64,000 nucleotides of DNA from Felis catus (taxonomy: Eukaryota), in assembly GCF_018350175.1 (NCBI RefSeq), contig NC_058382.1, positions 7,192,001 through 7,256,000 on the forward strand. The letters are read 5' to 3'. Shown one piece after another: positions 41,906-44,900 of the stretch; the first letter of the stretch is position 1; each line of letters begins with the position of its first letter. The notes under the pieces were generated by a model. That model made no database searches and was not told where the DNA came from. It was given only the letters and a program-made list of their open reading frames with translations. The position numbers were made by a program, and so were the translations under genes.

Positions 41906-41934
41906 ATGGAGGCCCCAGCAAGCAGGGGGACAAG
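41906..41934 (+). CDS. KLK12: KLK12 putative novel first coding segment (MEAPASRGT) in the upstream exon
   Basis: ATG in frame with the downstream exon after AAG|gtgagg to ttcccag|G splicing. Confidence 0.55.
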
Positions 41935-44900
41935 GTGAGGAGGGGGCAGGTGGTCCCCAATGAGGTGACCCCCGCTCCCCACCCGAGATGGGCAGAGGGG
42001 GGGATGGGCAGGCATCCTGTCCTCCTGGGGCTGCTGGCAGGCAGGTGGGGTGGGCAAAGAGAGGGGCAGGTTGACAGGGAAAGGGCCATCTCTGAGATTC
42101 TCCCAATGTTTCCCAGGACCTGGAGGTGGCTCACCCTGGGCTCCAGCATCCTGTTGCTCCTGTGTGTTTCTGGTGAGTTCCCCAGCGGGGCGGGAAGCCC
42201 TTCCTCCCTGACAGGGGGCCCTCCGATCTCCCCCTCCAGGTCTGATCCCCAGTCTGGCACTGAGGAGGGGAGGGGACTGCCTCTATGTCTCCACTCACCT
42301 CCAGCTCTTGGGGGCCCTGCCACCTCTGTCTTTTGACCTATACTTTCTCTGTGTCTTCCTGTCACTATGCCTCTGTCTTTTCTCTCTGCCTCTGTGCTTG
42401 TCTGTCTCTGTCTCACTCCTATCTTTTTTTTTTAAGATTGATTGATTGATTGATTGATTTAGAGACAGAGACAGTACAAGTGGGAGAGGGGCAGACAGAG
42501 AGGGGGACAGAGAATCCCAAGCAGGCTCTGTGTACAGAGCCCGATGCAGGGCTCCAGCTCACGAAACTGTGAGATCATGACCTGAGCCGAAAACCAAGAG
42601 TCGGATGCTTCAGCGACTGAGCCACCCAGGCGCCCCTGTCTCCCTCCTATCTTTAGGCATCTCTCTGTCTTTTTCTCTTTCTCTTCCTCTCTGTGTCTCT
42701 GGGCATCGCTGGGTCTTTTTGTATTTGTCCCTGGGTCTCTGTCTCCCTGTCTCTGACTCTCTCTCACGGTCTCTCTCTCTCTCTCTCTCTCTCTCTTACC
42801 TGTCTGTGTCTTCATCTCTGTATCTCTTTTCCTGTCTCTGAGCCCCAATCTCTAGATCTCTGACCCCATCTCTCTGGCCCACACCCCTGTCCTCAGGGCT
42901 CAGCCAACCGGCCACAGAGAAGATTATTAAAGGCAAGGAGTGTGCCCGTCACTCACAGCCTTGGCAAGTAGGGCTGTTCGAGGGCACCAGTCTGCGTTGT
43001 GGGGGGGTCCTCACCGGCCGCAGATGGGTCCTCACAGCTGCTCACTGTAGTGGCAGGTAAGCCCCTGGCTGGGTGTGGTCTCTTCCAGGGGTGGGCAGCG
43101 GAAAGGTGATGGGGAGGAGAACCCTCAGGGTAGGAGATGGGGGTACCAAGGAGTAAGGAAATGGTCTTGCAACAAAAGATTCTGAGGTTAGACAAAGAGT
43201 AGGACTTCTGCAACAATGGGTCTGGGGTGGGGCTGGGTGGGGCGGGTAGTGTGGGTGGCATGAGGGGTCCTGGAACCTGCTCATCTACCCGCTTCCATTT
43301 CCTCGTGTTCCCCTTCTTTCCCACATGACATCTGTCACCACCCCAGCTATTCCCTGACCCAGTCTGGGCATCTTCTCTGGGTCTCAGCAGTCCCATCTGT
43401 GACATGAGGAGATTGGACTTTCTAGGTCTGAAGCTCTGAGGTTTTTTCAAAAGGGAACTTTCAAACACGAAGAGGCAGATTGATTAGGGAGAGAACAGAG
43501 AGAGTCCACTCATTACTCACGCGTTCCTTCAGCTGACAGTGCTAACAGCCCAGGCGGCCTCTAGGTGGTGGGAACAGAGCAGCGAGCATGAAGGATGGAT
43601 GTGCTTGCCCTGGCTAAGAGACTCAGAAAGGGACAGAGATGCAGGGACTCGGGGAGGAGAAGTAGGCAAATGCAGGAAATGGAAAGATAGTGATAGAGAC
43701 GAGAGACAGAGAGACAGAACAAGCGTGTGAGGGAGGGAGGACTGACACTGAGGTGCAAAGCAGCAGAGAAAGGCTGGAGGGTCTGGGAGCCAGGGGTCCA
43801 CTGCCCCCCGCTGAGCCACCTTGACCCCCCCCCCCCCAGCAGGTACTGGGTGCGCCTGGGGGAGCACAGTCTTAGCCGTCTGGACTGGACGGAGCAGATC
43901 CGACGCAGCGGCTTCTCCGTGACCCACCCCGGCTACCAGAGAGCCGGGCACAGCCATGACAATGACCTCCGGCTCCTGCGACTGGGCACACCCGTCCGCT
44001 TGACCCGCAGCGTCCAGCTCCTGCCCCTGCCCACCACCTGTGCAGCAGCTGGCACCAAATGCCACATCTCAGGCTGGGGCATCACCAATCAGCCAGGGAG
44101 TAAGGGAGCCTCAGGGTCAGGGCTCAGAACGGGCAAAGTCTGGGGTGGGGACGAGAGATCAGGAGTCATCCCAACAGAAGGATGGATCAAGGGTCAAACA
44201 TGGGGATTGTGGTTTGGGCTCAGAGATCATGGTGGACCAGGGGTCTTGGGAGTCAAAGTGGTCAACGGGTTGGGTATGGAGTCAGAAGCCATAGGTCAGG
44301 GATGTGATTAGAGGCCAGAGTGATGGCAGAGATCATCAGACTGGAGCAAAAGGCACGGGTAAATAGGACCTTGGGTCATGGGTCAGAGACTCTGGTGTTA
44401 GAAGTCATTGTAGAGTTGAGGACATGGGATCCAGATGTTGCACAAGCTGGCCACAATCTGAGGCTAGAAACTGAGATTCAATCAGGGATTGCTGGTCTGG
44501 GATTGAAAGCCCTAGAGGTTAGGGGTCATGGAGTCTGGGGTCAAATAAACTAGGATCAGAAGTCACTTTGGAGCAGTGGTTTAGAGCTGAGTTTGGACGT
44601 TTAAGAGAAGACAAGAAATGTGGGGTCTGGAGACAGAGAGGGAACATGAGGTCAAGTTGGGATCTAAATATAATAAGATTGAAGGTCAAAGGGCACCGCA
44701 TGGGGAATTTAAGGAGAAAAGTCCGGATTCACTGTTTCTAGGGTTGGAGGGACAAAAGGTGTCTTGAGTTATGGCACTCAGAGTCATAGGTTAAAGGAGA
44801 GGGGGACTTGTGTCGAACTGGGGCAAGGGTCACTCTGAAATGAAGTCATAAATCTGAAATCTAGAAGTTTGAGGATTGTTGTGGAGAGTCGCAGGAAGAG

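Follow-up and report, generated by a model that had tools for sequence, protein, structure and literature searches.

In placental mammals such as the horse, elephant, anteater, star-nosed mole, and sifaka, kallikrein-related peptidase 12 (KLK12) has a canonical precursor of 248 amino acids (aa). The KLK12 gene of the cat, Felis catus, lies in the stretch of DNA analyzed here (GCF_018350175.1, contig NC_058382.1, positions 7,192,001–7,256,000 of the forward strand), a window of 64,000 nucleotides (nt) within which all positions below are given. The cat gene shares with the canonical genes the five exons, the 37-nt part of the signal exon, the total length when counted from the homologous position, and the signal peptide's hydrophobic core; it differs in that a leucine codon, CTG, stands where they have methionine, and in that their models lack the N-terminal extension that can be read in the cat. 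The present analysis, combined with a comparison of public proteins, suggests that the start of KLK12 has likely moved upstream, with ATG 41906 in a proximal 5′ exon as the main start and ATG 37770 in a distal 5′ exon as an alternative, each spliced in frame to position 42117 and each leading into an intact protease.

The start shift is real but not new, being present in public annotation and common to all carnivores sampled. RefSeq already models a 264-aa KLK12 in more than 25 carnivores, and the RefSeq/Gnomon entries for carnivore kallikrein-12 (XP_025770534.1 of Puma concolor, 264 aa; dog, seal, bear, and ferret) have the same exon structure, extension, and Leu as the cat, although they are automated predictions and are silent on the lost ATG. 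A dog protein, AIU47695.1 (248 aa; P0087), deposited as “kallikrein-related peptidase 12 model-2,” reflects the same start problem of carnivore KLK12, for which its depositors evidently weighed two start models; it differs in that Met is written at the CTG position, which amounts to a non-AUG start model. No paper describing AIU47695.1 was found in the searchable literature, nor was any account of the KLK12 start codon in carnivores, including in papers on KLK evolution (PMC2967472, PMC3707919).

Outside the KLK family, the nearest parallels are a long signal peptide and paired in-frame starts. In the signal peptide of PTPRJ (DEP1), too, the hydrophobic core is preceded by an extended n-region containing several Arg, and this Arg cluster reportedly dampens translation (PMC7725344); the KLK12 extension, by comparison, has only three or four Arg and is fast-evolving outside an RTWR motif. 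In mammalian genes with alternative in-frame starts and leaky scanning, each mRNA carries two in-frame sites whose use is set by their Kozak contexts, and a conserved frame is taken as a sign that an N-terminal extension is translated (PMC3105428, PMC7397870). KLK12 reverses the usual form of non-AUG extension: its upstream site is AUG, and it is the downstream site that has decayed to a near-cognate codon.

The cat KLK12 gene and its probable upstream start

All KLK12 features described here lie on the + strand. The proximal 5′ exon codes from 41906 to 41934; this stretch opens with ATG 41906 in the context ctacATGg and comprises nine codons and two bases, ending in the donor AAG/gtgagg. An intron of 182 nt (41935–42116) separates it from the signal exon (42117–42172; acceptor ttcccag/G), in which 19 nt of former leader, now coding, precede CTG 42136–42138 (context cacc-CTG-g) and the hydrophobic core; the exon ends 37 nt from the CTG at the donor CTG/gtgagt, in phase 1. 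An earlier, sequence-only reading of the same DNA had placed ATG 41906, a donor after 41934, an acceptor before 42117, and CTG 42136, and all of these coordinates match on rereading 41600–42500. Its figures of 37 nt from the CTG, 248 aa in total, and 264 aa with an in-frame extension of 16 aa were reproduced by exon-by-exon translation: starting at ATG 41906 the coding sequence measures 795 nt (264 aa), and starting at the CTG it measures 747 nt (248 aa), the latter total requiring the upstream AG, at 43840, of a cag/cag tandem acceptor in exon 3. In the spliced model, then, the ancestral AUG is absent and an upstream AUG is in frame with no stop between.

The remainder of the gene is undamaged, as that reading had also held. 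The downstream coding exons were placed by a three-frame scan and peptide anchors: exon 2 (42897–43056, phase 2) holds the end of the signal peptide, the propeptide, and the catalytic His (TAAHC); exon 3 (43840–44099, phase 1; acceptor 43840/43843) the catalytic Asp (DLRLL); exon 4 (45001–45134) ends in phase 0; and exon 5 (46032–46187) holds the catalytic Ser (GDSGGP) and the stop codon TAG (46185–46187). All five coding exons are open, their splice sites are intact, and His, Asp, and Ser all stand in their motifs. Searched singly, the four downstream exons each match Pfam Trypsin (PF00089, MEROPS S1A), with E values from 1.8e-13, obtained for exon 2, to 1.4e-07, and cover profile positions 1–44, 52–134, 136–177, and 178–220; exon 3 also matches solved trypsins and KLK5/KLK6. 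The bases carried across the four junctions number one, two, one, and zero, which corresponds to phases I-II-I-0. Genes of the KLK family have five coding exons with intron phases I-II-I-0. Homologues were sought with exon 3 only, taken as the stop-free stretch 43697–44308 (region 50–134) so that full-length relatives passed the length filter. This query returned 66 proteins, nearly every named one being called kallikrein-12 or kallikrein related peptidase 12 and a few bearing generic names, with exon 3 identities ranging from 99% in Puma down to 60% in marsupials. By these sequence criteria the gene is an intact felid orthologue of KLK12, encoding a trypsin-fold protease that is predicted to be secreted.

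The N-termini that the candidate starts would produce were compared by a simple count of properties (charge and hydropathy), not by a signal-peptide predictor. Every candidate start yields an uncharged core of 15–18 residues, whose best 9-residue window has a mean Kyte–Doolittle value of 2.8, and in all of them the core leads into a small-residue motif that would suit signal peptidase. From ATG 41906 the n-region has 13 residues and a net charge of +2, from an intronic ATG at 42106 it has 7 residues and a net charge of +2, and from ATG 37770 it has about 21 residues; CUG 42136 gives no n-region. The mature enzyme would be the same from any of these starts.

Taken together, these features are consistent with a compensated shift of the start codon, an option that the sequence-only reading had raised, with an extended signal n-region, and that the comparison with other felids supports: the spliced cat N-terminus equals that of the Puma RefSeq kallikrein-12 and is close to those of other felids. 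The change of the canonical ATG to CTG (Leu) would probably date to the ancestor of the living carnivores. Translation would now start mainly at ATG 41906 in the proximal 5′ exon, or alternatively at ATG 37770 in the distal one, each exon being spliced to 42117, and would give a preproenzyme of 264 aa (or 272 aa) whose signal peptide keeps its hydrophobic core behind a lengthened n-region of positive charge; once the signal peptide is cleaved, the mature protease should be as before. An upstream in-frame ATG that was there beforehand may have made the inner ATG dispensable and so permitted its repeated loss.

For the cat itself we infer the use of the 41934–42117 junction, the use of the ATG by ribosomes, and the cleavage site. 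For other carnivores, the exact 264-aa proteins of dog, otariids, phocids, and Mustela also occur in Logan assemblies of sequencing runs. The Logan open reading frames (ORFs) were called without introns, as is seen in a read-through ORF (P0001), and they include cDNA-like contigs (P0015, 247 aa on a 947-nt contig, and P0028). Because an exact spliced protein appears in an intron-blind set, mRNAs with this junction presumably exist in dog, otariids, phocids, and Mustela.

Leucine at the old start in carnivores and the probable history of the two ATGs

The N-termini of about 60 public KLK12 proteins were aligned on a conserved motif. A Leu occupies the ancestral start in 26 of the 26 carnivore models examined, which span Felidae, Herpestidae, Hyaenidae, Canidae, Ursidae, Phocidae, Otariidae, Odobenidae, and Mustelidae, and it aligns under the Met of horse, elephant, mole, anteater, and others. 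In the carnivore models built on the proximal 5′ exon the extension is always exactly 16 codons long with Met first. The sequence-only reading had proposed looking at 42136 and 41906 in other felids and carnivores, and in the public proteins both the Leu and the initial Met of the extension do recur. Within the felids, the cat translations of 41906–41932 and 42118–42171 show 0 mismatches with the 264-aa proteins of Puma, Acinonyx, and Lynx, the nine residues of the proximal 5′ exon being identical to the start of kallikrein-12 in these three, and against all felid proteins compared the cat protein has a single difference, Ser for Asn near the C terminus, in the last exon.

These data bear directly on two readings in which no shift has occurred. 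The first, in which the C at 42136 would be a mistake of assembly or sequencing for the A of a true ATG, has nothing behind it beyond the single-base difference itself, and it is countered by Leu at the equivalent position in twelve other felid proteins from independent assemblies and in all other carnivores; we regard its probability as negligible. The second holds that KLK12 is a pseudogene without a start, from which no protease is made. The canonical ATG is indeed missing, and an Ensembl protein of the polar bear (P0061) has been left without a start. However, the coding exons are open, the catalytic His, Asp, and Ser and the splice sites are in place, and a Leu shared by nine carnivore families dates the loss to tens of millions of years ago, yet mature identity among these families is 0.90 and the frame is undisrupted, so that this reading is highly improbable. 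Both had been listed as options by the sequence-only reading, and both were rejected, given the conserved intact protease and the recurrence of Leu in independent assemblies of nine families. On the comparative evidence the CTG at the old start is neither an assembly error nor the mark of an early pseudogene. Since all carnivore models carry Leu, the change from ATG to CTG appears to date back to the carnivore crown group or earlier and probably occurred in the common ancestor of living carnivores.

The constraint on the different parts of the precursor was gauged as mean pairwise identity among representatives of the nine families; the figures are confined to carnivores, as fixed offsets let indels distort the identities of the mature part outside them. 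Identity is 0.61 in the 5′-exon part of the extension, 0.73 in its signal-exon part, 0.83 in the hydrophobic core, and 0.90 in the mature protease, where the frame is disrupted in none of the nine families. Across 15 taxa the ATG of the extension and its length are invariant, and the eight neighboring codons show 2–5 variants each. By a rough estimate, at least ~2.5 visible changes per codon would correspond to ~3.3 expected hits on an unconstrained ATG and to a chance of ~0.04 that it received none. The pattern thus suggests that the protease is constrained, which argues against a pseudogene, whereas the extension keeps only its ATG and its frame. Because the extension would lie in a cleaved signal peptide, selection could act on the AUG and the frame alone, leaving the peptide to drift at a fixed length.

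Outside the carnivores, hedgehog, Myotis, hippopotamus, and the dolphin Sagmatias have the same 16-residue extension and retain the inner Met. The extension is also found with the inner Met replaced, by Thr in the pangolin Manis, by Thr in the bat Rhinolophus, and by Val in the bat Miniopterus. For horse, elephant, anteater, mole, primates, and rodents the models begin at the inner Met and as a rule comprise 248 aa; those of Glossophaga and peccary likewise lack the extension. A camel isoform (P0006) opens with a similar motif, but its model continues through the intron. The simplest history compatible with this distribution is that the upstream in-frame ATG predates the loss of the inner Met and was present by the Laurasiatherian ancestor, beside the canonical ATG. 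Within Laurasiatheria the inner ATG would then have been lost independently at least three times, and probably four, because Leu, Thr, and Val each represent a distinct single step away from ATG and because Myotis, the closest relative of Miniopterus among the sampled bats, retains Met. The sequence-only reading had framed the cat gene as a case of start-codon turnover. The shift it described is real; it is, however, carnivore-wide rather than specific to this genome or to felids, and the upstream ATG appears to be older than the loss. An association test between loss of the inner Met and presence of the extension was considered and rejected, since species lacking both starts would be left unannotated, an ascertainment bias.

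Other candidate starts and the weight of the evidence

KLK12 has two alternative 5′ exons, each with an in-frame ATG. The distal one, absent from the sequence-only reading, has its coding part at 37770–37822, opening with ATG 37770 and ending in the donor GCA/gtgagt, and it joins 42117 in frame, adding 24 codons. It might give the main start, with transcription from an upstream promoter, a splice from 37822 to 42117, and a 272-aa precursor. The ATG and the gtgagt donor are present and in frame, the homologous exon is used by tiger isoforms X1 and X2 (P0067 and P0078) and by a bovid protein (P0023), and the first 17 residues of tiger X1 (P0067, 272 aa) map to it; N-termini resembling its product are seen in the bovid protein (P0023) and in seal isoforms. 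Yet 11 of the 14 feliform models use the proximal exon instead, and among these models the distal form appears only as an additional tiger isoform, so that a main role for ATG 37770 seems unlikely, as distinct from the alternative role that we favor for it.

Two observations concern this exon itself. The region 37680–37822 is read in two frames in public models, tiger X1 opening at ATG 37770 and P0089, a dog RefSeq protein of older date, at a more upstream ATG. It also lies ~6 kb past the last exon of the upstream KLK13-like gene, and a shared or read-through transcript is possible.

The intron between the proximal 5′ exon and the signal exon offers further starts. Its 182 nt (41935–42116) are free of stops in the signal exon's frame, frame 2 being open from 41899 to 42333, and they include in-frame ATGs at 42004 and 42106. 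The latter, which the sequence-only reading had noted in the acceptor tract, was found in frame 30 nt (10 codons) upstream of the CTG; ATG 42004 is in frame if the intron is retained. Translation from ATG 42106 (or 42004) on transcripts that retain the intron or begin within it would give a precursor of 258 aa (or longer), with the 7-residue n-region of net charge +2 and the shared hydrophobic core making, in the case of ATG 42106, a textbook signal peptide, and camelid RefSeq isoforms (P0006, P0010) do read through the homologous intron. Nevertheless, no feliform model uses either ATG, the context of ATG 42106 (cccaATGt) is weak, the donor AAG/gtgagg and the pyrimidine-rich acceptor look efficient, and the homologous camelid codon is Asn, which implies that this ATG is not old. 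We give little credence to a main start within the intron.

The remaining candidate is the CUG at 42136 itself, read as Met by initiator tRNA to yield the ancestral 248-aa precursor, with the upstream ATG bypassed by leaky scanning or lying off the main transcript. The context of this codon is optimal (cacc-CTG-g), whereas ATG 41906 carries a T at −3, and since every carnivore has Thr, Ile, or Ala just ahead of the Leu, a purine is kept at position −3 of the Leu codon. The Thr and Val of the other lineages that lost the Met fit ACG and GTG, which are also near-cognate, and the dog protein AIU47695.1 writes Met at this very position. The pattern of Leu, Thr, and Val carries little weight, however, since every single-base neighbor of ATG is a near-cognate codon. 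Scanning ribosomes would meet the upstream in-frame AUG of the same mRNA first, and sole use of the CUG would leave unexplained why an upstream ATG and a 16-codon frame stay constant in nine carnivore families. Near-cognate codons are much weaker initiators than AUG, working at a small fraction of its rate. Initiation at the CUG is plausible as a minor route; that it is the principal start is very doubtful.

Several considerations nonetheless count against placing the main start at ATG 41906. The T at −3 of this ATG, set beside the optimal context that the CTG keeps, makes some CUG initiation plausible. An out-of-frame ATG at 41838–41840, with normal splicing, opens a 75-codon ORF that ends at 42969 in exon 2; if transcription starts upstream of 41838, this ORF, which overlaps both candidate starts, would lower translation of KLK12. 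The comparative evidence consists of predicted proteins, whose models are built to find an ATG and were possibly propagated between species, and species with a broken extension would be annotated differently. Finally, part of the conservation of the extension may be at the level of nucleotides and not of peptide: the invariant RTWR is encoded across the splice junction and the former leader of 19 nt, the codons for TWRW lie in the leader beside the acceptor, and the guinea-pig protein (P0047) has comparable letters in a different frame.

It is conceivable, although we consider it rather unlikely, that the two starts are not strict alternatives. Both may have coexisted for tens of millions of years, after which the inner AUG decayed to near-cognate codons in optimal context, to CUG in carnivores and likewise in pangolin, Rhinolophus, and Miniopterus. 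Species without the inner AUG may then make, from one mRNA, a long form from the AUG and a minor near-cognate form with a short signal, the ratio of the two tuning translation or secretion.

Two further features of the 5′ region bear on the transcripts. The ATG at 41838 joins the KLK12 frame when the signal exon is skipped, and a dog model of Ensembl type (P0086, 267 aa) takes this route from the homologous ATG. A possible upstream ORF of four codons (ATG to TGA, 41776–41790), lying outside the main frame, would be relevant only if transcription starts upstream of it. As to the origin of the exon that donates the start, the proximal 5′ exon and its flanks (41730–41960) contain degenerate GACAG/GGCAGGTGG motifs and several short direct repeats; this exon looks low in complexity and derived from repeats.

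Surroundings of KLK12 and implications

Elsewhere in the gene, the acceptor of exon 3 is of the NAGNAG type (43837–43843), and the choice between 43840 and 43843 keeps or omits one Ser codon (…HCSGSRYW… or …HCSGRYW…); isoforms with and without this codon are both present among the models of tiger, dog, fox, camel, Rhinolophus, and hedgehog. The first coding intron (42360–42800) holds a (GATT)6 microsatellite, a TC-rich tract of ~60 nt, and CT-rich 19-mers, all ordinary low-complexity sequence. The RefSeq kallikrein-12 of Lynx canadensis (P0074, 263 aa) finishes with the last exon of a KLK10-like gene, and the matching sequence lies at ~57.86 kb in the window; judged by this match, the 263-aa model is a KLK12–KLK10 chimera that would have arisen by read-through or annotation error.

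The window contains six tandem genes with trypsin motifs on the + strand, at 9.4–12.2, 28.0–31.4, 43.0–46.0, 50.1–51.9, 55.8–57.9, and 63.3 kb. The gene at 55.8–57.9 kb, two places downstream of KLK12, carries SDSGGP, and this Gly193Ser change has been called specific to KLK10 (PMC2967472). Judged from the trypsin motifs and SDSGGP, the order of the cluster fits KLK14-13-12-11-10-9. The only run of N in the window (52498–52673, 176 bases) lies just past the KLK11-like gene.

For annotation, these results mean that carnivore KLK12 is to be treated as a live gene with a 264-aa precursor, neither as a pseudogene without a start nor as a protein with Met at the CTG. There is also a practical consequence, if a modest one, in that expressing carnivore KLK12 requires the correct N-terminus for secretion. 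With respect to the evolution of translation starts, the locus is a clean and datable case of an upstream AUG on an alternative 5′ exon making the canonical AUG dispensable; events of this type are known in themselves, but the repeated loss of a canonical AUG after the gain of an upstream one may be new as a pattern.

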